Shown here in pieces: positions 51,188-64,000 of a stretch of DNA of 64,000 nucleotides. The notes below the pieces were generated by a model. The model was given only the letters and a program-made list of their open reading frames with translations. It did not search any database and had not been told where the DNA came from. A program made the translations under genes and the position numbers. The DNA lies in sequence record NC_019411.1. One strand, written 5' to 3'. Each line of letters starts with the position of its first letter. The stretch's first letter is position 1.

Positions 51188-52063
51188 ATGCCGCGCCTTT
51201 CCAACGATCGCCACGAGATGTACGCCCTGATGCGGGCCAAGGGCATGAAGCCCCAGGCCGCCGCCCAGGCCGCCGGCTTCGTGGCCGGCTCGTCGATCTA
51301 CGCCGAACTGGAGAAGGACCCCGAGGTCCAGGCGCGCGCCCAGGAACTGCTCGACGAGAACAACCTCAAGCGCGAGCAGATGCGCACCGCCGCCACCGAG
51401 GCGGCCAAGGTCGTCGGTCAGGTCTCGGGCCTGTCCAAGGCCTGGGTGCTCCAGAAGCTGGCCGAGAACGCCCAGATGGCGGCCCAGGACGGCGACTACA
51501 AGGAGAGCAACGCCGCCCTCAAGCTGATCGGCGACGAGTTCGGCATGTTCAGCGGCGCCTCCTCGGAAGGGACCGAGGGCCAGAACGGCGAGCGCGTCTA
51601 CGACCTCGACGGGCTGAGCGCCCTTCTCGTCAAGGGGACCTCGGCGATCCCCGTGCCGCCGCCCAAGGTCGACCCCTCGGCCGCCTTCGACCTGATCGCC
51701 GGCAACGGGGCCGCCGCCCGCCGCGCCCGCGAGAGCCGGGCCTTCTCCGACGGCGAGGAAAGCGACGCGGTGTTCTCCGAGGACGCCGATATCGACGCGG
51801 TCATGGACGGGGCCTGGAGCGGCCCCAGCCCCGACGACTACCTGGAGGCCGAAAATTCGCGCCAGGAGGCCCCTGAAGCCGCTGACCGACCCGAGCCCCC
51901 GGCCGACCCCGTTCCGGCCGCTGGCGACCCCGCGCAGGAGCCGGGAACCTGGGAGCAGATCGATCCCAAGACCTCCCCCGAAGCGATCATGGCGCGCATC
52001 CAAGCCGCCGGCCAATCCCCGACTTCCAGCGATGACCGGCCCAAGCGCCGCTCCTCGCGCTGA
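51188..52063 (+). CDS. terS: putative terminase small subunit
   Basis: directly upstream of terL; N-terminal HTH-like (KGMKPQAAAQAAGF), helical oligomerisation region; C-terminal acidic low-complexity tail. Confidence 0.6.
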   Translation: MPRLSNDRHEMYALMRAKGMKPQAAAQAAGFVAGSSIYAELEKDPEVQARAQELLDENNLKREQMRTAATEAAKVVGQVSGLSKAWVLQKLAENAQMAAQDGDYKESNAALKLIGDEFGMFSGASSEGTEGQNGERVYDLDGLSALLVKGTSAIPVPPPKVDPSAAFDLIAGNGAAARRARESRAFSDGEESDAVFSEDADIDAVMDGAWSGPSPDDYLEAENSRQEAPEAADRPEPPADPVPAAGDPAQEPGTWEQIDPKTSPEAIMARIQAAGQSPTSSDDRPKRRSSR

Positions 52064-52075
52064 CCCTAGAACGCC

Positions 52076-54808
52076 GTGAGCTACTATCCGATCGAGGACC
52101 GCGCCAAGGCCCGGTCCGTCGTCAAGAACCTGCTGGACCTTCAGCGCGAGGCGGTCAAGGCCTCGCGCGGCGGCCTGATCCTGCCGCCCGACCAGAAGGC
52201 GATCATCACCCAGGTCACCGAGACCGAGGACCCGGCCCGCTGGGTCGACCTTCTGGGCCAGTTCGCCGATCGCGTCCAGACCGATCACCTCGCCCGGCTG
52301 AAGCCCCTGGCCAAGCACGACTTCAACGCCTTCTGCGAATACGTCAATCCCGAGGAGGCCCCGGCCTCCAAGTGGCACGTCTACCTGACCTCGCTCCTCC
52401 AGGAGATCGAGAACAACCACGAGCTTGAGCGCTTCGTGCTCAACTGCCCGCCCGGTCACGCCAAGCCGCTCGACGTCGACACCGAGGTCCTGATGGCCGA
52501 CGGGTCCTGGAAGCGCCTGGGCGACATCACCGTGGGCGAATACGTGGTCGGCGAGAGCGGCGCGCGCTGCAAGGTCACCGCCGTCCACGAGCAGGGGGAG
52601 CTTGCCACCCTGAAGATCACCACCGCCCACGGCCGCCAGATCATCGCCGCCCCCGATCACGCCTTCCGGGTCGGCAACACCTGGAAGGAGGCGGGCAAGC
52701 TGCGGCCGGGGGATGCGCTGTCCGTGGTCGGCGCCGCCAACCTCAACTACGACGCCAGCGGCAAGACCATCGACCACTTCGAGCTTGCCGCCTACCTCCA
52801 GGCCAAGGGCGGACGCTCCTACTTCCACCGCGTCCACAAGAGCGGGCCGAAGACCTACCGCAACGTCTTCCTGTGGACCTCCGACCACCGCGAGGCCAGC
52901 AAGATCAGCGCCTGCCTCAAGCGCCTGGGGATCGCCTTCAAGGGGCGCCTCGCCAAGCACGAGCAGGTCTGGAAGATGCGTCTGGCCACCGAATGGGGCG
53001 ACGCCCTGGCCGAGGAGTACGGCCTGGACGCGCGGATCGACGCGCGCCGGGTTCCGGCCTTTGTCACGAAAGGCGACGAGGAGCAGATCGCCCGCTACCT
53101 GTCGACCTACGCCTCCCTGGCCGGCGAGGCGCCCGACCGCTACACCATCCCGCGCATCATCCTCTACTTCAAGAACCCGGCCTTCGCCCGCGACATCCAG
53201 CGCCTGTTCGCCGTGGTCGGCGTCAACGCCCGCATCGAGGGGCGCAAGACCGGCCGCACCCGGCTGATCCTGTCGGGGCCGGACCTGGAGGCCTACTTCG
53301 CCGCCGGCCTGACCTACACCGGCCCCAACGCCGACAAGCTCGACGACAAGCGCGCGGCCTTCCCGACCTCGCCCTCGCTCCTGGCCGACACCGTCACCTG
53401 GATCGAGCCGCACGGCGTGCGCCCCTGCCGCTGCCTGACCGTCGAGGACGAGCACACCTTCATCGCCGAAGGCGTGGTGGTCCACAACTCGACCTACGCC
53501 TCGCGCCTGTTCGTGGCGTGGCGCCTGGGGCGCGATCCGCGCCAGAAGATCATCGGCGGCGGTCACTCCCAGCGCTTCGTCGAGAACGAGTTCTCCGGCA
53601 AGATTCGCAACCTCGTGCGCACCCCGCAATATCGCGACGTCTTCCCCGACGTGGTCATCGACCACGCCACCTCGGCCAAGGACATGTGGGCGATCGCCGG
53701 GCACGGTGGGCAGTACGCCGCCAAGGGCGCCGGGCAGGCCATCCACGGTCTGCGCGCCCACTTCGTCTGCGTCGACGACCCCTACCGGTCGATCGAAGTG
53801 GCCGAGTCCGCGATCGAGCGCGAGAAGATCAAGACGTGGTTCTTCGGCGACGTTGGCTCGCGTTTGTTGCCGCTCGCCAAAGTATTCCTCATCATGACGC
53901 GCTTCCATGAGGAAGATTTGACCGGGGAGATCATCAAACTCAACCAAGAAGTTCTCACCGGCGCCGACCGTTATCACATCGTTGAAGCGCCCGCCCTGTG
54001 CTACGACCCCGAGAACGACGTCCTGGGCCGGGCTCTGGGCGAAGTTTTGTGGGACTACTATGACTTGCATTATTTCAAGCGCAAGCGGTCCGAGTGGAAG
54101 TACCAAAGATTTGCTTTGGTTTATCAACAACTTGCCGACGCGGCCTCGGACACCTCCATCGCGTCCAAGTTTCAGACCTACGATCACCTGCCCCACCTGG
54201 AGCCGAAGGTGCTCAAGGCCCGGCTTGACGCGGGTCACGCCGACGAGCGCGGGCGGCCGATTCCGGACCGCAAGGAGCACTTCCGGCGGGTGGTGGTCAG
54301 CGTCGACTCGGCCAACAAGCCCGGCGCCCGCAACGACTACAGCGTCGCCCAGGTCTGGGGGGAGACCCACGCCCGCAAGCACTACCTGATCTACCAGGAG
54401 CGCAAGAAGGTCGACATCACCGGCCTGACCGAGATGATCGAGCGGGTGGCCAAGCGCTACGAGGTCGACGCCATCCTGGTCGAAGACAAGGGCAACGGCA
54501 CCGCCTACATCCAGGCTCGGGGCCAGACCGACAGCCAGCGGCGGCTCGCCCCGGCCCCGATCGAGGCGATCCAGGTCCCGAGCACCTATTCCAAGGAGTT
54601 CCGCTTCAACGAGATCGTCCCGATGATCGAGGCCGGCGAGGTCTTCCTGCCGGGCAAGGCCCCGTGGCTCGACCTGCTGATCCGCGAAATCGGTCAGTTC
54701 CCCGAAGGCGCCCATGACGACCAAGTCGACGCCATGACGCAGTACCTCCGCTGGGCCAAGTCCAAGCGCACGCGGTTCGGCGCGCGCAAGGTCGGCTCGA
54801 TGGGCTGA
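52076..54808 (+). CDS. terL: terminase large subunit, intein-interrupted
   Basis: Walker A PPGHAK/ST split by intein; Walker B FVCVDDP; nuclease SVDSA...HDDQVDA. Confidence 0.92.
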   Translation: MSYYPIEDRAKARSVVKNLLDLQREAVKASRGGLILPPDQKAIITQVTETEDPARWVDLLGQFADRVQTDHLARLKPLAKHDFNAFCEYVNPEEAPASKWHVYLTSLLQEIENNHELERFVLNCPPGHAKPLDVDTEVLMADGSWKRLGDITVGEYVVGESGARCKVTAVHEQGELATLKITTAHGRQIIAAPDHAFRVGNTWKEAGKLRPGDALSVVGAANLNYDASGKTIDHFELAAYLQAKGGRSYFHRVHKSGPKTYRNVFLWTSDHREASKISACLKRLGIAFKGRLAKHEQVWKMRLATEWGDALAEEYGLDARIDARRVPAFVTKGDEEQIARYLSTYASLAGEAPDRYTIPRIILYFKNPAFARDIQRLFAVVGVNARIEGRKTGRTRLILSGPDLEAYFAAGLTYTGPNADKLDDKRAAFPTSPSLLADTVTWIEPHGVRPCRCLTVEDEHTFIAEGVVVHNSTYASRLFVAWRLGRDPRQKIIGGGHSQRFVENEFSGKIRNLVRTPQYRDVFPDVVIDHATSAKDMWAIAGHGGQYAAKGAGQAIHGLRAHFVCVDDPYRSIEVAESAIEREKIKTWFFGDVGSRLLPLAKVFLIMTRFHEEDLTGEIIKLNQEVLTGADRYHIVEAPALCYDPENDVLGRALGEVLWDYYDLHYFKRKRSEWKYQRFALVYQQLADAASDTSIASKFQTYDHLPHLEPKVLKARLDAGHADERGRPIPDRKEHFRRVVVSVDSANKPGARNDYSVAQVWGETHARKHYLIYQERKKVDITGLTEMIERVAKRYEVDAILVEDKGNGTAYIQARGQTDSQRRLAPAPIEAIQVPSTYSKEFRFNEIVPMIEAGEVFLPGKAPWLDLLIREIGQFPEGAHDDQVDAMTQYLRWAKSKRTRFGARKVGSMG
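52466..53488 (+). mobile_element. 341-aa intein with degenerate LAGLIDADG domain
   Basis: PLDVDTEVLMADG start; block B AAPDH; block F CRCLTVED; end VVHN followed by Ser. Confidence 0.88.
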
Positions 54809-54811
54809 CGA

Positions 54812-54880
54812 GGCCCGTTAACCACGTTTGTTAACCTCCGCCGGGGCCTTAACCCTAACACGGCGAGGGTTAACAGGTCC
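54812..54880. repeat. TTAAC-rich element, near copy of 56040-56064
   Basis: GGCCCGTTAACCACGTTTGTTAACC (1 mismatch to 56040 copy). Confidence 0.8.
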
Positions 54881-55034
54881 AGGGACCCTTCGAAATTAAC
54901 CTTTCGGGGACCCTGGGAAATCGACAGACGGGGACCCTGGCCATTTTCCGGCTGGGGACCCTGCCAAATTCATCGCCGGGGACCCTCCGAAATTCATCTC
55001 TGGGGACCCTGGCGAATTCAGAGCCGGGGACCCT
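54881..55034. repeat. 24-bp-period GGGGACCCT array
   Basis: cores at 54906, 54930, 54954, 54978, 55002, 55026 plus AGGGACCCT at 54881. Confidence 0.9.
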
Positions 55035-55054
55035 GGCGAATCATGGAGCCGACG

Positions 55055-55246
55055 ATGGCCGGATTTCTCAACCTGATCCCGAACCTCGCGCCGTTCGCGC
55101 TTTGGGGCGTCCTCCTCTGGATCGCCGCCGAGGTGGTCTGGAGCGTCTGCCTCTGGGTCTACGGCCTGCGGACCCTGTTCAAGCTGCACCGCGACGATCT
55201 GGCCGAGGCGATCAGCTTCGAGCGGGCCTTGAGCCCCTTCGACTAG
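55055..55246 (+). CDS. small membrane protein
   Basis: GGAG RBS; hydrophobic segment. Confidence 0.5.
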   Translation: MAGFLNLIPNLAPFALWGVLLWIAAEVVWSVCLWVYGLRTLFKLHRDDLAEAISFERALSPFD

Positions 55247-55329
55247 GCGCGGCCTGCCGACCTAAGTCACGGACTGTAGGTTTCATGACAAGGTGGATTA
55301 TTCCACAACGAAATCAAAGGCTTATCGCC

Positions 55330-55578
55330 ATGTCGATCCGCGCGTTCCTCCACGATCTGGCTGTCCGCTTCGTCGTTTTGGGGTGGATTTTTGCTCAAAA
55401 ACCCCAGAAATGGGCTCCAAAAGGGCATAATTTTCAGCCCATCCCGCCGGCCCAGGTCGAGCGGCAGGACCTCCGGGGGCGCGTGCTACTCCTGAGGAGC
55501 TTCGGCGTCCTCGCCGCCGCATGCACAACCATGGGCCTGTGTCAATACCTGCTCTGGCGCCGCGCGGCCATGTCATAG
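55330..55578 (+). CDS. possible small membrane protein
   Basis: two hydrophobic segments; atypical codons. Confidence 0.3.
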   Translation: MSIRAFLHDLAVRFVVLGWIFAQKPQKWAPKGHNFQPIPPAQVERQDLRGRVLLLRSFGVLAAACTTMGLCQYLLWRRAAMS

Positions 55579-55722
55579 ACTAGGGCTTTCGTGACAGCTT
55601 CACGATCCCGTTACCGGACAACCCCATGCCTCACCTGGGTTTCTGGCTCTCCGCCGCCTGCATCGCTCTGGCCTGGGCGATCTGGGCGCTGCGGCGGCTG
55701 ATCGGCCCACCACCGCCCACCT

Positions 55723-55756
55723 GATACCGGCGGCGCGAGCCCGCGCCGCCGGTATC
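55723..55756. other. 15-bp perfect hairpin
   Basis: GATACCGGCGGCGCG-AGCC-CGCGCCGCCGGTATC. Confidence 0.7.
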
Positions 55757-55858
55757 GCCCGGCCAAAGCATCATATATGAGCCCTTAACCCCTCTAAGGT
55801 CTCATATATGCGACCTTACGGCCCTCTTGACGCCCTCGTGTTCCTCTGAACGCGGGGG

Positions 55859-55960
55859 CGTTTTGACGTCGGCGCATTTCCAACTCAACGCGCGGCCGTT
55901 TTGACGTCCGAGCGTTTTGACGCGAGCGCATTTTCGATTCGACGGGCGAGCGTTTTGACG
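55859..55960. repeat. CGTTTTGACG x4 (54-bp tandem duplication)
   Basis: copies at 55859, 55897, 55913, 55951. Confidence 0.85.
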
Positions 55961-56004
55961 TCCGAACGTTTTTCAACTTGACGTCGTTTCATTTACCACG
56001 AGCG

Positions 56005-56220
56005 CCTTAAGGTTAACCGCCGAGCCTGGGAAGGGTTAAGGCCCGTTAACCATGTTTGTTAACCCTCAGGCCGTTAACCCATCGCCCGTTAAGGTTAACG
56101 CACCCGCCCCCATTAACCCTTAGCGTGTTAAGGTTAACGCCCCGCCCGCCAACGTTAGGGTTAACAGGCCGTTAAGGTTAACAAACATGGTTAACGGGCC
56201 AGACCGGCGTTAACCCTAAC
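56005..56220. repeat. dense GTTAAC/TTAAGG array with 25-bp perfect inverted repeat
   Basis: GGCCCGTTAACCATGTTTGTTAACC 56040-56064 and its reverse complement 56176-56200. Confidence 0.9.
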
Positions 56221-56304
56221 GGCCGGCGCCCAGGCGTTCGCCGGCGAGCCCAGGCCCAGGCCCTACCGGGTATGACCTGCCGGCCATACCCGGTAGGGCG
56301 CGCC

Positions 56305-56562
56305 TCACGCGTCCGCGTCGGGCGACGCCGCCGCGCCGTATTCGTGGTCATTCCAGAGTATGCCCAGAATTTCGTCAGGCCCGAACGAAGGCAACAGGGT
56401 TTGCAGGGCGTCGTATGTCTCGCGAAAGGCGCTCGCGTCGTCGTCTTGCATCCAAACCGACTCCTTGCCGGCCTTGTCGCGGAACGTGTACGCCGCGCCG
56501 TTCCCGTAGCTGTCGAGGGCGAAGCGTTCGCCCTCCGAAATGCGTAGCGGTCCTGAGTACAT
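56305..56562 (-). CDS. hypothetical protein (divergent early gene)
   Basis: TTGGAG RBS, ATG 56562; CtrA-like box upstream. Confidence 0.6.
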   Translation of the reverse strand: MYSGPLRISEGERFALDSYGNGAAYTFRDKAGKESVWMQDDDASAFRETYDALQTLLPSFGPDEILGILWNDHEYGAAASPDADA

Positions 56563-56618
56563 GGGGCGATCTCCAAGGGCGCGGGGTGCGCCGACCCGTG
56601 CAATCTGACAGCCAATTC

Positions 56619-56634
56619 TTAACAAAAGGTTACC
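56619..56634 (-). promoter_or_regulatory. CtrA-like box, leftward
   Basis: minus strand GTAA-CCTTTTG-TTAAG. Confidence 0.6.
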
Positions 56635-56652
56635 GTGAGATTTTTCTTGCCG

Positions 56653-56685
56653 TTTACTTTTTGTTAAGAATTGGGGTCTAGTGTC
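56653..56685 (+). promoter_or_regulatory. CtrA-box promoter
   Basis: TTTA-N7-TTAAG; CTAGTGTC 14 nt after second half-site. Confidence 0.7.
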
Positions 56686-56734
56686 CTCCTTGTCGGGGCC
56701 AGCCCCGGCGCTCTTTGACATTGTGAGGCAATCC

Positions 56735-56923
56735 ATGATTCCCCAAGAAATCCTGAATCCGCGCGAGCACTGGACTCCCGTCGCCTCGCGCGAGGAAGCC
56801 GACAAGATCGCCGCGCGCTGCACCGAAGGCGACCCCGTCGGCCGCTACTATGTCGAGCCCAAGGGCGCCGGCTACGCTGTCGCCTATGACGACGAGGCGG
56901 GCGAATTCGTCGCCTACCTTTAA
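56735..56923 (+). CDS. hypothetical protein
   Basis: GAGG RBS; start MIPQEI. Confidence 0.7.
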   Translation: MIPQEILNPREHWTPVASREEADKIAARCTEGDPVGRYYVEPKGAGYAVAYDDEAGEFVAYL

Positions 56924-56950
56924 CCTTTTGTTAAGACCTGACCTCTAAAC
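56920..56950 (+). promoter_or_regulatory. CtrA-box promoter
   Basis: perfect TTAA-CCTTTTG-TTAA; CTAAAC. Confidence 0.8.
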
Positions 56951-56984
56951 AGGGGTCAGGTTCAACCCCTGGAGGCCCTGCCCC

Positions 56985-57524
56985 ATGTCCGTTATCGAAA
57001 CCGCCAACCTCTCGCGCGGCCGTGTTCTCACGGTCGAAATCGACGACTGCGCTCAAGAGCCCTACGCCGACGACAAGGGCGTGCGAATCGTCGTCCTGCA
57101 TCGCCATTGGGCGAACCCCGCCGCCGGCCTGCTGGACACCGTCGAGGACGTTCAAGCCTTCGAGGCGCAGAACGCCGCGCCCGACTCCGCATGGGCGATC
57201 TTTGAGCTATGGGTGATGGACCATAGCGGCCGGACCTTCAAGGCCGGCGCGCTGGGCGCCGGAAACCCGTTCGGCGCCGGACCCTACGCGCAATGGGATA
57301 GCGGCCGGGTCGGAGTCATCGCCCTGGCGCGCGCCGAGTGGCCCGCCGCCGACCTCAAGACCGCCCAAGGCGTCGCCGACACCTACGGCGCATGGGCCGA
57401 AGGCGAGGTTTACCAATTCGTCATTTCGAACCGCCGGGGCGACGTGCTCGACTCGTGCGGCGGGTTCTACAGCGTCGCCGAAGCCCTGGCCGCCGGCCGC
57501 GACGCCGCCAAGGTGAAGGCGTGA
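56985..57524 (+). CDS. hypothetical protein
   Basis: GGAGG RBS; WDSGRVG, WAEGEVY, DSCGGFY blocks. Confidence 0.75.
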   Translation: MSVIETANLSRGRVLTVEIDDCAQEPYADDKGVRIVVLHRHWANPAAGLLDTVEDVQAFEAQNAAPDSAWAIFELWVMDHSGRTFKAGALGAGNPFGAGPYAQWDSGRVGVIALARAEWPAADLKTAQGVADTYGAWAEGEVYQFVISNRRGDVLDSCGGFYSVAEALAAGRDAAKVKA

Positions 57525-57715
57525 GGGTCGCCCGCGAAAGCTTCGCCGTGTTCTGGACCCGCCCCGGCTGGCGCGTCCAGTTTCACGCCGACATGAAACG
57601 GGCGCTGTACCCGACCGCCAAGGCCGCCGCCGACGCCTTCGCCGCCATGTTCCCGGCTGATCAGGTCAAGAGCGTGCGCGACGGTTCCGGCCGCTTCCTG
57701 GCCTTCAAGCGCTAG
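57521..57715 (+). CDS. hypothetical protein
   Basis: GTGA coupling. Confidence 0.55.
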   Translation: MRVARESFAVFWTRPGWRVQFHADMKRALYPTAKAAADAFAAMFPADQVKSVRDGSGRFLAFKR

Positions 57716-57720
57716 ACCAG

Positions 57721-57756
57721 ACGCCCCGGAAAACTTTTCCGGGGCGTTTACTTTTT
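57721..57756 (+). terminator. intrinsic terminator overlapping CtrA box
   Basis: ACGCCCCGGAAAA/TTTTCCGGGGCGT then T-rich tract. Confidence 0.7.
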
Positions 57757-57780
57757 GTTAAGGAATGGCGTCTAGTGTCC
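57747..57780 (+). promoter_or_regulatory. CtrA-box promoter
   Basis: TTTA-CTTTTTG-TTAAG; CTAGTGTC. Confidence 0.7.
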
Positions 57781-57824
57781 CTCTTGCCGCCGGGCAATCC
57801 CGCCCGGCCTTGGAGTTCTTCCCC

Positions 57825-58343
57825 ATGCCGGAATTTGTCCTAGATACGTCGGGCCAAGTCGCCCCGCCCGCCGCCGCCAAGCTTTGGCCGCACCCCCTGG
57901 CCTGGAATCAGTTGAGCGATTTTGCTCAAGGCTATATCGAGGCCCTGTTTTTCACCGAGTCGTCGCCGGCCTATGACCGCGCCGAATGGTTCGGCGCCGA
58001 GTGTCAAGAGGCCCTGACCGAAGGCACGGCGGACGGCAACATTCCGGGCGATGTCGGTTTTTCCGACCTCGCGCCCGACACCCTCAACCGCATCTTGAAC
58101 GACTGCGCCAACTTCAAGCGCGAGCACGCCGACACCCTGGCCAAGGCCTATGACCACGGCGGCGCGGCGGGCGACTATGACGAAACCCAAGCCGGCCGCG
58201 ATTACTGGTACACCCGCAACGGCCATGGCGTCGGGTTTTGGGATCGCGGACTCGGCGAGATCGGCGAGGCCCTGAGCAAGGCCGCCCGCTACAGCGAGCA
58301 AAACGCCTCTTTCGAAGAGGACGGAAAAGTCTACCTGTTTTAA
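57825..58343 (+). CDS. hypothetical protein
   Basis: TTGGAG RBS; GRDYWYTRNGHGVGFWDRG block. Confidence 0.75.
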   Translation: MPEFVLDTSGQVAPPAAAKLWPHPLAWNQLSDFAQGYIEALFFTESSPAYDRAEWFGAECQEALTEGTADGNIPGDVGFSDLAPDTLNRILNDCANFKREHADTLAKAYDHGGAAGDYDETQAGRDYWYTRNGHGVGFWDRGLGEIGEALSKAARYSEQNASFEEDGKVYLF

Positions 58344-58372
58344 CCTTTTGTTAAGACTTGGCCTCTAGGGTC
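58340..58372 (+). promoter_or_regulatory. CtrA-box promoter
   Basis: perfect TTAA-CCTTTTG-TTAA; CTAGGGTC. Confidence 0.8.
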
Positions 58373-58435
58373 GAGTTGTCCCGGCGCCGGGGCTGGAAAC
58401 CCCGGCGCGTCCATTCCGTGAAAGGAATCCATACC

Positions 58436-59188
58436 GTGTCTTTTGGTCAATTCTCCGCCGACGCCCGCGCCCCGCTGTCGAAAGCCGCCATGCTGGACGC
58501 CCTCCCCGCCGCCCGCCGCGACGCTCTGGTCAAGTCCAGCAAGCCGGCGCGCAACACCCTCGATTACACGACGTCGGACGGCGTGCGCCGCGTGCGCCTG
58601 CATGACACCGACGTCCTGACCTTCCATGTCAACGGCGCCGTCGAGATCAACACGGGCGGCTGGAATACCCTCACCACGCGCGACCGCATCAACGCTTTCG
58701 CCCCGCCTCACGTGCGCGTCTACAGCGACAAGGGCCGCGCCGTGGTTCACGCCTTGCCGGCCGGCGCCAGCGCCGTCACGTGGTCCAGCCCCGCCGCGTC
58801 CAAGCCGTTCGCCAAGCGCGCCACCGTCCACCCGGACGGCCGAATCGAAGTGGACGCCACCGTCAAGGAACTGGAGGCGATTCCTAGCCTCATCCGCCGC
58901 TATCTGGAGGCCTTCAAGGCCGGTTTCCCGTTCAACTCGTCGGGCGACCCGTGGATGACGCCCGGCGCCCTCGTCGCCCCTGAAACGGCCCTGGATTGGC
59001 TGGGCGCCGACAGCGGCAAGCCGTACCTGTTCGACTCGATCCTGTTTCACGCCCATGTCGCGGCCGGCCTTACCGAAGAGGGCGCGGCCGGCTACATGCG
59101 CGACCTCTTCCGCCACCCGGCGCGGCTGGATAAGTTCCACCTCGGCCGCATCCGGCGTTATCTCAAGCGCTGCTTGCGCGACGCCTAA
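58436..59188 (+). CDS. hypothetical protein
   Basis: AAAGGA RBS, GTG start; LHDTDV...NTGGWNTLTTRDRIN. Confidence 0.7.
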   Translation: MSFGQFSADARAPLSKAAMLDALPAARRDALVKSSKPARNTLDYTTSDGVRRVRLHDTDVLTFHVNGAVEINTGGWNTLTTRDRINAFAPPHVRVYSDKGRAVVHALPAGASAVTWSSPAASKPFAKRATVHPDGRIEVDATVKELEAIPSLIRRYLEAFKAGFPFNSSGDPWMTPGALVAPETALDWLGADSGKPYLFDSILFHAHVAAGLTEEGAAGYMRDLFRHPARLDKFHLGRIRRYLKRCLRDA

Positions 59189-59195
59189 GACCCTC

Positions 59196-59229
59196 CGGCC
59201 GCGCCTCCCCTGGCGCGGCCGTTCTTTTT
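59196..59229 (+). terminator. intrinsic terminator
   Basis: CGGCCGCGCC/GGCGCGGCCG then TTCTTTTT. Confidence 0.8.
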
Positions 59230-59240
59230 CCGTGTACGCG

Positions 59241-59275
59241 TTAACTTGTTGTTAAGACTTTATCCGCTAGTGTCC
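59241..59275 (+). promoter_or_regulatory. CtrA-box promoter
   Basis: perfect TTAA-CTTGTTG-TTAA; GCTAGTGTC. Confidence 0.8.
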
Positions 59276-59318
59276 CTTTGCCGGCGCACTTCCGCGCCCT
59301 CACCTGGAGATTTTCCCC

Positions 59319-59939
59319 ATGGTCCGCCTGATCAAAGCCAAGACCGCCGCCGAACAAGCCGAAGCCCTCGCCAGCCTGCGCAAGATGATCAAGCCGGGCG
59401 ACACGGTTTATCCCGTGCTGCGCCACGTCTCGACCTCCGGCATGTTGCGGGTCATTGACCTGATTATCCCGGTCACCGTCACCCAAACCGACACCTTGCC
59501 GGCCGATGCGCGCGGCTTCAAGATCGGCGTTCAAGCCTATGCGACCCCGCCGGAACGCAACGCCCCCCGCGCCTTCTCAACCGGTACGGTTTCGGCTTTC
59601 GACGCCGACACCGTGACCATTACCTATCAGGCCACCGCCGACGGCCGGGGCGACGCGGAGTCGGTGACGTGGCCCCGTGGTCAGGTCAAGTTCTACCGCA
59701 AGAGCACGCGCCCCGGCGTCCGCTCGATCGGCTGGCTTGCCGCGAAGGCCATGGGCGACACTTTCGACGCCGACCGCCAAGGAATCAAGGTCGGCGGGTG
59801 CGGGATGGATATGGGCTTTCACCTCGTTTACAGCCTGGGCCGCACCTTGTGGCCGAAGGGGACGAAAAAGCCCCATGGCTCGCGCAATGGCGAGCCCGAC
59901 CGCGACGGCGGTTATGCGCTGAAACATTCCTGGCTTTAA
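59319..59939 (+). CDS. hypothetical protein
   Basis: GGAG RBS; LRHVSTSGM...GCGMDMGFHLVY blocks. Confidence 0.75.
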   Translation: MVRLIKAKTAAEQAEALASLRKMIKPGDTVYPVLRHVSTSGMLRVIDLIIPVTVTQTDTLPADARGFKIGVQAYATPPERNAPRAFSTGTVSAFDADTVTITYQATADGRGDAESVTWPRGQVKFYRKSTRPGVRSIGWLAAKAMGDTFDADRQGIKVGGCGMDMGFHLVYSLGRTLWPKGTKKPHGSRNGEPDRDGGYALKHSWL

Positions 59940-59970
59940 CTTTTTGTTAAGAGTTTAGCCGCTAATGTCT
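59936..59970 (+). promoter_or_regulatory. CtrA-box promoter
   Basis: perfect TTAA-CTTTTTG-TTAA; GCTAATGTC. Confidence 0.8.
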
Positions 59971-60017
59971 CCTTGCGGCCGGGCAATCCCGCCCGGCCGC
60001 ACTGGAAAGCCAAGCCC

Positions 60018-60290
60018 ATGACCCGCGCTCAAGCCCTCGCCGAAATGAACGCCCTCCCCGGTATCATCGCCTCTTTCGAGCGCGAGACGGGCGAATATCG
60101 CGTCACCCTGCGCTTTGGCCCCCTGCCGGGCGGCCGGGGCGCTCAAGAGTGGATGCACAAGCGCCGCGAAGCCGTCGCCAGCTACAGCGACGACAAGGCC
60201 GACGCCCTGGCCACCGCCCGCGACATGTCGGCCCGTTGGGAAGCCATGACGCCCGCGCAACGTGATCACCTGTACCGCCACCCCGCGTAA
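60018..60290 (+). CDS. hypothetical protein
   Basis: start MTRAQA. Confidence 0.7.
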   Translation: MTRAQALAEMNALPGIIASFERETGEYRVTLRFGPLPGGRGAQEWMHKRREAVASYSDDKADALATARDMSARWEAMTPAQRDHLYRHPA

Positions 60291-60320
60291 CCCTTCCTTA
60301 AGACCTCGCCGCCTAGGGTG
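60287..60320 (+). promoter_or_regulatory. CtrA-box promoter
   Basis: GTAA-CCCTTCC-TTAAG; CTAGGGT. Confidence 0.65.
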
Positions 60321-60354
60321 GCGGGGTCATCAACCCCCGCAAGGATCGCCCGAC

Positions 60355-60633
60355 ATGCGCAAGCCCCTCACCCAAGAGCAAAAGGCCCGCCGCCGCGCCC
60401 AACGCCGCGCCGCCCGCCTCGCCTGGAGCGACGAACGCCGCGCGGCCGAATACGCCCGCCAATCGCGCTTTTTCCTGATGATCGCCGAACGCGCCCAAGC
60501 GGCGGGCGACGCCAAGGAAGCCGCCCGCCTCGCCACCGTCGCCCAACGCAAGGTCACTAACTGGCGCATGGCGCAAGCCTGCGCTCGAATCAACGCCCTG
60601 GCGGTTCACGCCTGGGCTTCCGTCGCCGCCTAA
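60355..60633 (+). CDS. basic Arg/Ala-rich hypothetical protein
   Basis: AAGGA RBS; start MRKPLT. Confidence 0.65.
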   Translation: MRKPLTQEQKARRRAQRRAARLAWSDERRAAEYARQSRFFLMIAERAQAAGDAKEAARLATVAQRKVTNWRMAQACARINALAVHAWASVAA

Positions 60634-60645
60634 GGAGCCGCAACC

Positions 60646-60969
60646 ATGCCCCCGATGACTCACCCTCACGCCCTGGCCTTGATCGCGCTCGCCGAAAAGG
60701 TCTTGCCCCTGACCCGGCTGGACCCGCTGGACCAGCGCGCCGCCGCTGTCGACCTGATCGGCGATCTTTACAGCCTCGCCGACTCCATCGACGCCACCGC
60801 CGGCCACTTGGTCGAGGCCGTCAACGGCGCCTTGCGCGACGGCTGCGAGGGTTACGCGCCCAAGAGCCGCGCCGCCGCCGCTGTCGCCACCGTCCGCGCC
60901 GACGAACTGCGCTCCGCCCTGGAAGCGTACACCGAAGCCGCCGCCCTGGCCCTGCCGAAGGTCGCCTAA
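60646..60969 (+). CDS. hypothetical protein
   Basis: AAGGAG RBS. Confidence 0.7.
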   Translation: MPPMTHPHALALIALAEKVLPLTRLDPLDQRAAAVDLIGDLYSLADSIDATAGHLVEAVNGALRDGCEGYAPKSRAAAAVATVRADELRSALEAYTEAAALALPKVA

Positions 60970-60972
60970 GCC

Positions 60973-61641
60973 ATGTCGCAACGCTACCGCCTCGCGCCCT
61001 CCGCCCGCGTCTCCAAGACGCTTTCGGACCTGCTTTATGCGGCGTCGGAAGTCGTCGCCACGGCGGCGCAATATGAGACGACGCCCGCCGGTCAAACCAA
61101 GCTCGCCAAGATGCGCGGCGACCTGATCACCGAAAGCGCCGGCGCCCTTGTGCGCAAGCCGCCTAGCGCCGTCCTCGCAACCCTCGTTTGGGTTGTCGAA
61201 CTGGCGCAAGCCCGCGCCACGGAAAACGACTTCGGCAACGCTCAAGAGGCGCTGGACGAACACGACGCCTTAGCGTTCGTCGCCGATTGGCTGGAAGCCG
61301 AAGGCGTGGACGTGAGCGACATTCGCGGCGCCGCGCCCTCCGCCGAAGCCTTGGCCGAACTGGTCGCCCGTCGCGACGCCGAACAAGAGGCGCTGGACGC
61401 CCTAGAGCGCCCCGTTCCCCTCATCGCGTCGGATAAGGCCTATGCGCTTGCCGAAGTCTTCGGCGGGCTGATCCCGGCCGCCCTGGCGCTGGGCTATGAA
61501 TTCCACGTCAGGCCCGACGGGCTCGCCCCGCCGCACTACGTCAGCCGCAACGGCGTTCCCGTCGCCGCGTACTACGCCGACAAGGAAGCGCTCGCGCTGG
61601 ACACCCTCGCCATTCACATTGACCAAGCCAAGGAAGCCTAG
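60973..61641 (+). CDS. hypothetical protein
   Basis: packed ORF. Confidence 0.7.
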   Translation: MSQRYRLAPSARVSKTLSDLLYAASEVVATAAQYETTPAGQTKLAKMRGDLITESAGALVRKPPSAVLATLVWVVELAQARATENDFGNAQEALDEHDALAFVADWLEAEGVDVSDIRGAAPSAEALAELVARRDAEQEALDALERPVPLIASDKAYALAEVFGGLIPAALALGYEFHVRPDGLAPPHYVSRNGVPVAAYYADKEALALDTLAIHIDQAKEA

Positions 61642-61644
61642 ACC

Positions 61645-62355
61645 ATGACCGCCCCCGCCCTGACCCGCGCCGCCGCCCTCGAAGCCCTGGAAATCGCCCG
61701 CGCCAACCTCGCCGCCGGTCCTGCCCTGGCCAAGGCCGCCGACGGCGTGACGAATGTGTGTCACTTCGCCCTGACCCGCGCCGCCATGCTCAAGGCCGCC
61801 AACATGATCGCCGCCGCCGCCCCGGCGCTGGACCTGGGCGCCGTCTCGACGGCTGATCTTATCGCCGAACTCTACCGCCGCCCCGTGGCGCTTTGCGTGT
61901 TCGAAGCCGCCGACGTGTTGAGCGAGGCGCCCGGCGCTTTCGACGACGCCGACGACGCGGGCCAATGGCTGGCGAGCAAGTCCAGCTATATCGGCGACGC
62001 GATGAGCGGCGCCGGCTGGGACTCGGTGCGCTATCACCTGACCGCCGACGGCCGGGCGACCGATGACGACGAGGAAGCCGACGACGAGGGCGACGCCCTC
62101 CCCGTCGCCGTGACCTTGGAGCAAGGCGACGCGGTCCCCGTGGTCGGGCGCTTCGCTACCGTGGCGGAGGCTGAAACCTTCCTGGCGTCGCCGATCCGTG
62201 ATCAAGCCGCCCTGGAGGCCGGCCGCTACGGTATCGACGCGCCGCACGGCGTGGCCAGCGACGACGACGCCGTGACCCTGGCGCGGCGCCTGGGCTGGGC
62301 TGGCGTGGCGAACGCGGCCGAAGCCTTGCGCTTCCTGGCCAAAATCGAGCCTTAA
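61645..62355 (+). CDS. Ala-rich hypothetical protein
   Basis: AAGGA RBS. Confidence 0.7.
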   Translation: MTAPALTRAAALEALEIARANLAAGPALAKAADGVTNVCHFALTRAAMLKAANMIAAAAPALDLGAVSTADLIAELYRRPVALCVFEAADVLSEAPGAFDDADDAGQWLASKSSYIGDAMSGAGWDSVRYHLTADGRATDDDEEADDEGDALPVAVTLEQGDAVPVVGRFATVAEAETFLASPIRDQAALEAGRYGIDAPHGVASDDDAVTLARRLGWAGVANAAEALRFLAKIEP

Positions 62356-62546
62356 GCCCGCCTAAGTCATCAAACCGACCGTCTATGACTTGTCACCGGC
62401 CGAACTCTTGCCCGGTGACAGTCTGGGCAAGTAAAGCTCACTCTTGATTTTATGACTTAGCGCAAAAGATTGAAATTGCTCGAAAAATTCCTCGAAGCTC
62501 ACAAAGTCGTTTTCTGGCTGCTTTTGCTGGCCTGTTTGTGGCGCTT

Positions 62547-62580
62547 TTAACGGTTTGTTAACCCCTGGCCCTCTAGGGTC
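62547..62580 (+). promoter_or_regulatory. CtrA-box promoter
   Basis: perfect TTAA-CGGTTTG-TTAAC; CTAGGGTC. Confidence 0.85.
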
Positions 62581-62633
62581 GAATTCCCGGCGCGGCAATC
62601 CCGCCGCCCGGCCTTCCTTCGGAGCTTCTGATC

Positions 62634-63080
62634 ATGTTCGCTTCCGTGACCCTCCCCGCCCATGACGCCCAAGGCCTGAGCCTCGAAACCGTCCACATGG
62701 TTTTCGCCCGTGAACTGGCGCAACACTTCGACCACGTGATTTCCGCCCCCGTGGTCGAAAGCTGGACCGACGAGGACACCGGCGCCGTGCAAGAGCAAGC
62801 CGCCGTCTGCTTCACCGTTTCGGCGACCCCGGCCGCGTGGGAAGCCAAGGGCGGGCGCCTCGCGCGCCGGCTGGAAAACCTCGCCGCGCGCTATGCCGCC
62901 GACTGCGACGCCCCGGCCCTGACCGTCACCCACTGCGACGGCTCGACGGTCTATGTCGGCGCTCTGGAAGCCCTGGCGCGCCCCGCCCCGGTGCAAGGCC
63001 CGACCCGCGACGCGGACCCGGCTTTCCTCCCCCGCCAGCGCGAGGACAAGGCCGCCCGCTTCGATCGCCTGACCGCCTAG
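62634..63080 (+). CDS. hypothetical protein
   Basis: GGAG RBS behind CtrA promoter. Confidence 0.7.
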   Translation: MFASVTLPAHDAQGLSLETVHMVFARELAQHFDHVISAPVVESWTDEDTGAVQEQAAVCFTVSATPAAWEAKGGRLARRLENLAARYAADCDAPALTVTHCDGSTVYVGALEALARPAPVQGPTRDADPAFLPRQREDKAARFDRLTA

Positions 63081-63097
63081 CCCCTGGCCTTCCCCCT

Positions 63098-63132
63098 AGC
63101 GCACCGCCCCTAGAAAGGCGGTGCGCTTTTCT
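63098..63132 (+). terminator. intrinsic terminator
   Basis: AGCGCACCGCC/GGCGGTGCGCT then TTTCT. Confidence 0.75.
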
Positions 63133-63139
63133 GTGTCTG

Positions 63140-63174
63140 TTTACTTGTTGTTAAGGAATAGCCTGCTAGTGTCC
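63140..63174 (+). promoter_or_regulatory. CtrA-box promoter
   Basis: TTTA-CTTGTTG-TTAAG; GCTAGTGTC. Confidence 0.7.
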
Positions 63175-63223
63175 CCTTGTCGGCGGACGCATCCCGCGCC
63201 CGCCCCTTTCTGGATCGCTCCCC

Positions 63224-63616
63224 ATGGCTCGCCCCTCTGACCTGCTCAACGTCAACGCCGCCCGCGTCCTGGCTTGCCTTGAGCCTATCGCCGCCGCCGC
63301 TAAGACCGCCCCGGCCGCCGACCGCGCCGCCCTTTCCTACCTGCTCGACGCTGGCGAGTATGTCGCCGCGTGGCGCCGCAACCTCACGGAAACCGACCGC
63401 CGCAAGGCCTATGGCGCGGCCTGCGCCGCCGAAGCCCTGGCGCTCGCTAACGCCTATCAGCCCGCCACCCTGCAAGGCGGCGCCGTCCGCCGCGCGCTGG
63501 GCGCCTATGCCGCCGCCCTGAAGGTCCTGCTAGACGGGGAGCCGGTCAAGGCGGTGCGCGCCGCCGAAGGCGCGGCGCTTTCGGTCCGCGCTCGCTACGC
63601 CAACACCCGCCTTTAA
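63224..63616 (+). CDS. Ala-rich hypothetical protein
   Basis: behind CtrA promoter. Confidence 0.7.
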   Translation: MARPSDLLNVNAARVLACLEPIAAAAKTAPAADRAALSYLLDAGEYVAAWRRNLTETDRRKAYGAACAAEALALANAYQPATLQGGAVRRALGAYAAALKVLLDGEPVKAVRAAEGAALSVRARYANTRL

Positions 63617-63645
63617 CCTCTTGTTAACACCCCCCGGCTATGGTC
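63613..63645 (+). promoter_or_regulatory. CtrA-box promoter
   Basis: perfect TTAA-CCTCTTG-TTAAC; GCTATGGTC. Confidence 0.85.
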
Positions 63646-63670
63646 GGGGGGTCGCAAGGAGACACCCGAC

Positions 63671-63865
63671 ATGACCCGCCCCGGCCCCGCCTCGCTCCTG
63701 ACCCCGCAAGCCCGCTTCTCGTCGCCGCGCGTCCTGATCCTTCCGGGCGCGGCTCCCATGCCGATTCGCCAGCCGCGCGGCCTTTGCGCCGTCGAGTGCG
63801 TCGCCCTTGGCGTGACGCTGGGCGCGGCGCTCTACCTCGCCGCCCGCGTGTTCGGTCTGGTCTGA
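63671..63865 (+). CDS. small protein with C-terminal TM segment
   Basis: AAGGAG RBS; hydrophobic C-terminus. Confidence 0.6.
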   Translation: MTRPGPASLLTPQARFSSPRVLILPGAAPMPIRQPRGLCAVECVALGVTLGAALYLAARVFGLV

Positions 63866-64000
63866 CCAGACCCCCGCCCGCCCCCGGTCGGACCGGTCGG
63901 GGGTGTGTCCCATAATGACACACCCCCCGCCACCTAGTATCTTTTTTGATTCGGAGGGACCCAAAGGCCCCCTACGTTAACCATTTTTGGCGGCGCCCCC

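Follow-up and report, generated by a model that had tools for sequence, protein, structure and literature searches.

A conserved array of CtrA-type half-sites in the terminal repeat of Caulobacter phage CcrSwift as a candidate docking platform for a host regulator

Here we describe a dense array of TTAA motifs, referred to as array B, which lies inside the direct terminal repeat (DTR) of Caulobacter phage CcrSwift, and we propose that it may act as a multivalent docking platform for the host master regulator CtrA, possibly together with SciP, a reading based on sequence comparison to which we assign a probability of about 0.5. Phages of the phiCbK-like group, which serve as standard tools in cell-cycle studies, infect Caulobacter solely at its swarmer stage, and a number of their early promoters are known to be driven by host CtrA. 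The anatomy of the array, its conservation, the identity of its motifs with validated CtrA boxes and its absence from RNA contigs are observed directly, whereas the binder and any downstream effect are inferred. The position of the array, its apparent silence, its inverted partner array and its association with two further iteron arrays suggest a cis-acting control element operating at the level of DNA, rather than a promoter, and we read the array as neither a gene nor a DNA structure.

The stretch of DNA analyzed here (the window, 64,000 nt) represents the final 64 kb of the CcrSwift record (NC_019411), its last position, 64000, being the genome end; positions 54700-56400 are 100% identical to positions 671-2371 of the record, and array B corresponds to record positions 1976-2191 (features are listed in Table 1). 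The left boundary of the DTR has been mapped to codon 652 of terL (Gill et al. 2012), and since the boundary in the window likewise falls within terL, array B lies some 2 kb inside the repeat and not at its edge. Packaging begins at the left boundary (Gill et al. 2012), and the right DTR, with the array copy of this window ~8 kb from its tip, should therefore enter the cell first. An earlier note on this DNA had placed the array on the first-injected DNA; its location in the right DTR is established, while its first entry is probable, on the reasoning that the DNA packaged last would be ejected first (Gill et al. 2012). At the far end of the repeat, a GTTAACCAT motif occurs at 63976-63984, 24 bp from the right DTR end, and in phiCbK a GTTAAC likewise lies 24 bp from that phage's own DTR boundary (10263 versus 10287).

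Table 1. Features of the CcrSwift terminal repeat around array B, in window coordinates.
Feature	Position	Strand	Remarks
Direct terminal repeat (DTR), right copy	54030-64000	+	9,971 bp; first base at 54030; left boundary within terL
TTAA array A	54812-54874	+	Directly after terL stop
GGGGACCC iterons (GGGWCCC)	54881-55041	+	7 copies, exact 24-bp phase, right after array A
TTTTGACG(TC) array	55827-55985	+	6 TTGACG, abuts array B; conserved in Dolichocephalovirinae
TTAA array B	56005-56220	.	16 TTAA, 10 GTTAAC heptamer sites
12-mer variants	56154 (GTTAGGGTTAAC); 56006 (CTTAAGGTTAAC)	+	
N9 module, left copy	56040-56064	+	GTTAACCATG + TTTGTTAAC; contains exact SciP-type RTTAACCATR
12-mer GTTAAGGTTAAC	56088-56099	+	Further copies start at 56127 and 56171
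12-mer, reverse copy	56209-56220		Degenerate reverse copy at 56112
Sole canonical TTAA-N7-TTAA pair of array B	56161-56175	.	Arises between two adjacent 12-mers
N9 module, right copy	56176-56200	-	Exact reverse complement of left copy; overlaps 12-mer 56171-56182
Conserved hairpin, 18-bp stem	56260-56299	.	Between array B and 3' end of minus-strand gp004

Of the 50 TTAA motifs in the window, 16 fall between 56007 and 56213, and array B holds 10 of the window's 18 GTTAAC sites, the expectation for the entire window being 2.65 +/- 1.6; across the 219-kb CcrSwift record, GTTAAC occurs 49 times versus three occurrences of a reversed control word. These counts bear out the dense TTAA/GTTAAC cluster of ~215 bp that had been reported for this region. 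The true repeating unit is an oriented heptamer, GGTTAAC/GTTAACC, with all 10 GTTAAC sites preceded by G or followed by C, and with four C-flanked sites on the left facing five G-flanked sites on the right. This heptamer occurs mostly within a 12-mer, GTTA(A/G)GGTTAAC (TTAA-N2-TTAA), of which there are five copies in direct orientation and two in reverse, one of the latter degenerate, and four TTAA pairs 6 bp apart make up this unit. A second unit, the N9 module (TTAACCAT-n-TTTGTTAAC), is present in two inverted copies that form the perfect 25-bp inverted repeat noted previously, its arms being separated by 111 nt; the 25-mer has zero matches in shuffled windows. The further copy said to follow terL does differ from it at a single base and forms part of array A, where a GTTAACCCTAAC-like unit (54845-54859) and a GTTAAC (54869) accompany this one-mismatch N9 module (54812-54836); array A has the opposite orientation to the right arm of array B, to which it is 96% complementary over 26 nt. 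The 9-nt spacing that had been ascribed to the TTAA pairs, as opposed to the 7 nt of canonical CtrA boxes, holds for the repeat arms but not for the array, where N2 dominates; N7 accounts for one of the 15 adjacent spacings (at 56161) and N6 for another (at 56036). Exact matches to the 10-nt SciP-associated consensus RTTAACCATR are found as GTTAACCATG at 56045 and as its complement at 56186-56195, and the other strand of the 12-mer matches this consensus at nine of ten positions.

An array at 1.9-2.2 kb, together with a smaller cluster just after terL, was found in all 12 phiCbK-like genomes examined. In an alignment of the 12 phages, mean identity was 0.953 for TTAA columns versus 0.779 for other columns (Mann-Whitney p = 3e-6), and 34 of 47 TTAA columns were invariant versus 44 of 115 others. 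Repeat units have been gained and lost among these phages, with drift of both spacers and copy number. Both 25-bp arms are present in four of the 12 (Swift, Rogue, BL64 and RBC63) and one arm lies in the array of BL10; phiCbK, Karma, Magneto, Ccr2, Ccr5, Ccr10 and BL57 have no arm within the array, which all of them retain. As the paired arms are lineage-limited and the TTAA motifs are kept, it is the motif array, and not the inverted repeat, that represents the conserved feature. A lack of conservation in relatives, one half of what the earlier note had said would refute its proposal, is contradicted by the presence of the array in all 12 close relatives and in distant phages.

Colossus, CcrPW and CcrSC, with TerL proteins that are ~53% identical, and the Brevundimonas phages Bajun, Bambus and Gurke also carry arrays of the 12-mer, located 1.2-2 kb downstream of terL; the identity of DTR DNA to phiCbK-like DTRs has been given as 12% for CcrPW and 8% for CcrSC (Mascolo et al. 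2022, PMC9437464). Scanning viral contigs for two 12-mers 3-25 nt apart yielded 41 loci, and in at least 34 of these loci, which were found by motif alone, a TerL homolog (33-56% identity) is encoded directly beside the arrays. A recurrent layout was identified, in which terS-terL is followed by array A, GGGWCCC iterons (4-9 copies at ~24-bp phase), an interval of ~1.0-1.4 kb and an inverted array B, with members of the Dolichocephalovirinae carrying an extra TTGACG array just ahead of array B; CcrSwift has all four parts. This layout is common to phages of Caulobacter, Brevundimonas, Sphingobium (Lacusarx), Erythrobacter and Citromicrobium, as well as to most of the environmental contigs checked. 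In CcrSwift, PHROGs profiles place TerS at 51188-52063 and also recognize a Holliday-junction resolvase; for the nearby small ORFs and those upstream of terL, there were no Pfam matches and PHROGs otherwise returned only 'unknown function'.

With respect to the individual repeats, the GGGWCCC motif after terL was observed in Brevundimonas, Colossus-type, Lacusarx and Citromicrobium phages and in many environmental contigs. TTGACG arrays were also seen in Brevundimonas phage Bambus (13 copies, mostly at a 16-bp period; locus L020, 6786-7016) and in CcrSC (seven copies at ~27 bp; locus L024, 2872-3030), the TTGACG core being the Caulobacter -35 hexamer. The Microcystis cyanophage Mwe-JY26, with an equally diverged TerL, has no GTTAAC and no TTAA arrays, and a Ruegeria phage of the same TerL clade has no arrays. 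Downstream of its terL (locus L106, 5211-7700), Mwe-JY26 has other dense repeats, namely CTCCAGGC (13 copies) and AGGGGCGC (10 copies).

Across 39 non-redundant arrays, the commonest distances between adjacent TTAA motifs are 6 (191 cases), 21-22 (100), 11 (45) and 13 (39), from which it follows that the 12-mers mostly lie whole helical turns apart, including the canonical N7 arrangement. The two central bases of TTAA-N2-TTAA read GG/CC in 340 of the 365 instances, and 342 distinct instances yield the consensus YGTTAAGGTTAACR, a 14-bp near-dyad whose 5' flank is T-rich. The N9 module of the Swift arms recurs singly in several distinct sequence contexts on unrelated contigs. Isolated 12-mers (96 distinct) stand after terminators, 28-30 or 40-44 bp upstream of TTGAC and before small genes beyond array B, and they often complete an imperfect N7 box with (G/T)TAAC on the left; at that position, phiCbK-like phages have N7 CtrA boxes 60-72 bp before start codons.

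Within 401 sampled alphaproteobacterial genomes the exact 12-mer is rare (at most three per genome, no commoner than the control word), so that host CtrA regulons do not seem to use it. Only a few Rhodobacterales, from genomes picked for tandem copies, are enriched in the 12-mer (10-19 copies versus 0-1 for the control), and here it forms tandem arrays of up to seven copies at a 16-21-bp period (loci L052, 7774-7900; L057, 6132-6165; L065, 785-893; L040, 1-109), in the gaps between housekeeping genes (for example hemC, gltA, RNase R and serS), and the arrays of several loci share the flank TATTTGG...AAGATGAAG. These arrays look like a dispersed repeat family or a host-factor site, and this enrichment neither proves nor excludes a host factor. 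Tandem 12-mers also occur in many Bacteroidales genomes (Prevotella/Bacteroidales loci, L025-L066), which have no CtrA, and probably represent an unrelated repeat element.

Transcription was assessed from assembled contigs of four RNA-seq runs from a single 2023 study that contain a phiCbK-like phage, mapped onto the relative Karma, which shares 51% of 31-mers with phiCbK over the first 4 kb. Contigs of the four runs extend from terL to 1724-1766, at a predicted terminator, and resume at 2190-2237, with the TTGACG array, array B and the hairpin present in none of the contigs of any run. Array B appears untranscribed, and the contig gap is weak evidence of silence; since the repeats are shorter than the assembly word, low coverage is its likelier cause. 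Rfam searches with array B gave no family match, only sub-threshold microRNA-like hairpins, and as the RNA contigs also skip the region, an RNA gene was rejected. In most lineages array B faces gene 3' ends on both sides, as the next gene is encoded on the minus strand in Swift, Rogue, BL64, Colossus, CcrPW, Bajun and Bambus. CtrA boxes are expected at about -35 of a CtrA-dependent promoter; array B is instead flanked by convergent units, and no promoter-like site was seen inside it in simple scans for sigma-70 promoters and terminators, which were uninformative.

Two further features lie beyond array B. The 56260-56299 hairpin is without a T tract and its arm order is swapped between Swift, Rogue and BL64 and the phiCbK lineage, a difference that tracks the presence of the additional gene gp004 (56305-56562, minus strand). 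At 56619-56667, in the interval separating gp004 on the minus strand from gp005, lie divergent one-mismatch CtrA boxes (TTAACAAAAGGTTAC and TTTACTTTTTGTTAA), which suggests that CtrA drives a pair of divergent promoters here.

The best half-site for CtrA is GTTAAC, and GTTAACCATG corresponds to the motif from SciP ChIP, making host CtrA, possibly together with SciP, the likeliest protein to bind array B. Among other readings, the earlier note had proposed a CtrA half-site sponge or sensor; the TTAA columns and the motif grammar of distant phages support a protein-binding array of CtrA-type half-sites. The published CtrA matrix reaches its top score, 19.8, for GTTAAC-N5-GTTAAC (Mascolo et al. 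2022, PMC9437464), and array B presents the half-site of this matrix (GTTAAC with a T-rich 5' flank), its TTTGTTAAC flank being common to validated boxes; for example, CtrA binds and activates the phiCbK gp005 and gp018 promoters, which have the same TTTGTTAAC half-sites (PMC9437464). The CtrA site table of that study includes two weak sites within the Magneto array, filed as upstream of gp004 (PMC9437464). RTTAACCATR has been reported as the SciP ChIP consensus (Fumeaux et al. 2014, PMC4083442), and the targets that CtrA is known to recognize include sites with N6 spacing, lone half-sites and clusters bound cooperatively (PMC11264516). CtrA has a mean identity of 74% across Alphaproteobacteria and a conserved motif. 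Several observations favor a host factor: isolated 12-mers stand at fixed distances from promoters, the earliest of which must be read by host factors; among the hosts and phages concerned, CtrA is much better conserved than TerS; and GTTAAC is missing from the cyanophage with similar TerL divergence.

Other candidate readers of the motif were also considered. The Swift record contains no OmpR-type DNA-binding domain (Trans_reg_C), which again favors a host factor, and a phage-encoded CtrA-like protein was rejected on these grounds. A cluster of methylation sites, as in the GATC sites of oriC or in P1 pac, was rejected given that the paper on the phiCbK genome makes no mention of a DNA methyltransferase for phiCbK-like phages; for Colossus it mentions only a possible rRNA methyltransferase. 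For TgrL, an XRE factor of phiCbK, the text of the corresponding paper gives no motif, and its supplements hold no DTR gene entries under the names tried.

Several observations count against CtrA. The dominant N2 12-mer, with its near-invariant GG center, is no described CtrA configuration, the exact 12-mer is rare in the alphaproteobacterial genomes sampled, the arrays are lacking from the Ruegeria phage despite its CtrA-bearing host, and the arrays are invariably accompanied by terS-terL, as would fit a function in packaging and a phage-encoded binder. A competing though rather unlikely alternative, in line with the phage protein of related specificity raised in the earlier note, is that a conserved phage DNA-binding protein, with TerS the obvious candidate, would read the 12-mer; the two arrays and the GGGWCCC iterons would then make up a packaging recognition or synapsis region by the packaging start site. 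In agreement with this alternative, the arrays stand immediately after terS-terL in at least 34 of the 41 motif-found viral loci, with array A starting ~10-60 bp from the terL stop in many; arrays A and B are mutually inverted, as are the R sites of lambda cosB; the 14-bp near-dyad YGTTAAGGTTAACR is also what a distinct, dimeric protein might recognize; host chromosomes rarely contain the 12-mer; and the cyanophage relative has other repeats at this location, as expected if the motif tracks a diverging phage protein. However, the mapped genome-end cut lies 0.8-2.2 kb away, at a distance that varies among phages, and known TerS sites are found within a few hundred bp of their cut. In addition, the 12-mer also stands at a fixed distance upstream of dozens of promoters, where terminase has no reason to bind, and TerS proteins, compared over their N-terminal regions, are only 25-37% identical across array-bearing phages that keep the motif letter for letter. 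The GGGWCCC iterons offer a better fit for the TerS ring than the 12-mer, and the GGGGACCC iterons of CcrSwift are a good candidate for its binding site.

If host CtrA is indeed the binder, CtrA~P, abundant in swarmer cells, the targets of this phage, would be expected to fill array B cooperatively, possibly together with SciP, and the array would couple a DNA-level event at the boundary of early and late parts of the genome to the host cell-cycle state, rather than switch a single promoter. Such coupling is suggested by the location of the array between convergent units, apparently untranscribed, with an inverted partner ~1.1 kb away across the GGGGACCC iterons. The event in question might be a hold placed on DNA entry, on the start of replication or on packaging; alternatively, the array may raise the local concentration of CtrA for neighboring CtrA-dependent early promoters. 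In its most far-reaching form, which we consider a long shot, this proposal would see the paired inverted arrays, placed at the inner edge of the DTR that enters first, as a DNA cell-cycle lock of a TerL-defined clade of alphaproteobacterial phages, filled by CtrA~P in the swarmer cell and holding the genome at the early/late boundary, through an entry pause or a block of replication or packaging, until CtrA is cleared.

At similarly long odds, and by analogy with phage T5, the arrays may act as an injection stop, such that host protein bound at the inner end of the first-entering DTR would halt transfer and only DTR early genes would be expressed first. To our knowledge, two-step transfer has never been reported for phiCbK-like phages, which counts against this possibility. 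Among described architectures, the T5 injection-stop region (iss) is the closest analog, resembling the present region point by point: both have a ~10-kb terminal repeat of small genes with a large, untranslated, repeat-rich inner region (Davison 2020, bioRxiv 10.1101/866236), which is conserved better than nearby genes and contains paired inverted modules 1-4 kb apart and boxes for a host master regulator. A region of this type, with its repeat order conserved, is found at the inner end of the long DTR in phages ranging from those of Caulobacter to those of Erythrobacter, and as the right DTR should enter first, the analogy is geometrically consistent. The two systems differ in that the boxes are for DnaA in T5 and of CtrA type here; furthermore, two-step transfer has been shown only for T5 and BF23, and the DnaA model for T5 is itself an in-silico proposal.

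A replication origin under CtrA control, as in Caulobacter itself, is a very doubtful explanation of the region. CtrA silences the host origin through clustered sites, and by this account the iterons (GGGGACCC and TTTTGACG) would stand beside CtrA sites that silence initiation in G1, in keeping with a conserved non-coding region that contains three distinct arrays of phased repeats and with the absence of the stretch around array B from RNA contigs. However, there is no AT-rich unwinding element (GC is ~0.60-0.62 in the array B region) and no GC-skew turn at the site, and no initiator gene is recognizable nearby by Pfam or PHROGs. CtrA is abundant in the host, and its titration by the array as a sponge at low phage copy number looks unlikely. 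Finally, the suggestion that a cruciform extruded by the 25-bp repeat marks the DTR boundary is extremely improbable and was discarded, for although the arms are perfect and fold far better than shuffles as single-stranded DNA (z = -7.6), the boundary is 2 kb away, the 111-nt spacer disfavors extrusion in duplex DNA, the paired arms are confined to four relatives while others keep the array without them, and the arms never vary and so offer no evidence of covariation.

The concentration of CtrA sites in these DTRs is already published (Mascolo et al. 2022, PMC9437464), and array B shares with the clusters of that study the same phages, the same DTR and the same GTTAAC half-site. The published sites, however, are TTAA-N7-TTAA boxes at promoters, whereas array B has mostly N2, N9 and N17 spacings and lies between gene 3' ends; that study (PMC9437464) is without the 12-mer, the N9 module and the terL-linked layout of array A, GGGWCCC iterons and array B, and does not describe the array as an element. 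A literature search by motif likewise found no account of this non-promoter array, of its two repeat units (12-mer and N9 module) or of the composite layout next to terL. The SciP/CtrA motif 'TTAACCAT' of Caulobacter S-phase promoters (Fumeaux et al. 2014, PMC4083442) recurs as an exact RTTAACCATR in the arms of array B; in the host it is single and overlaps a promoter CtrA box, whereas in the phage it is arrayed outside promoters. Upstream of Caulobacter pilA, several CtrA sites are likewise non-consensus (N6, half-sites) and jointly raise CtrA affinity (PMC11264516), but there four sites tune one promoter, whereas array B comprises 16 half-sites with no adjacent promoter in most lineages.

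Together these findings point to a second, much denser, non-promoter class of CtrA-type sites, tied to the terminase end of the DTR and retained, amid diverging DNA on either side, in phages from at least five genera of host. If CtrA or SciP proves to be the binder, the array would provide a direct handle on how a phage reads the host cell-cycle state at the level of DNA, with the 12-mer as a defined short element to mutate; if a phage protein binds instead, the array would define a packaging or entry signal of this phage group. Should the cell-cycle lock prove true, it would supply a mechanical basis for the proposed 'lytic deferment' and represent a second, independent use by a phage of a host master regulator as an entry stop.
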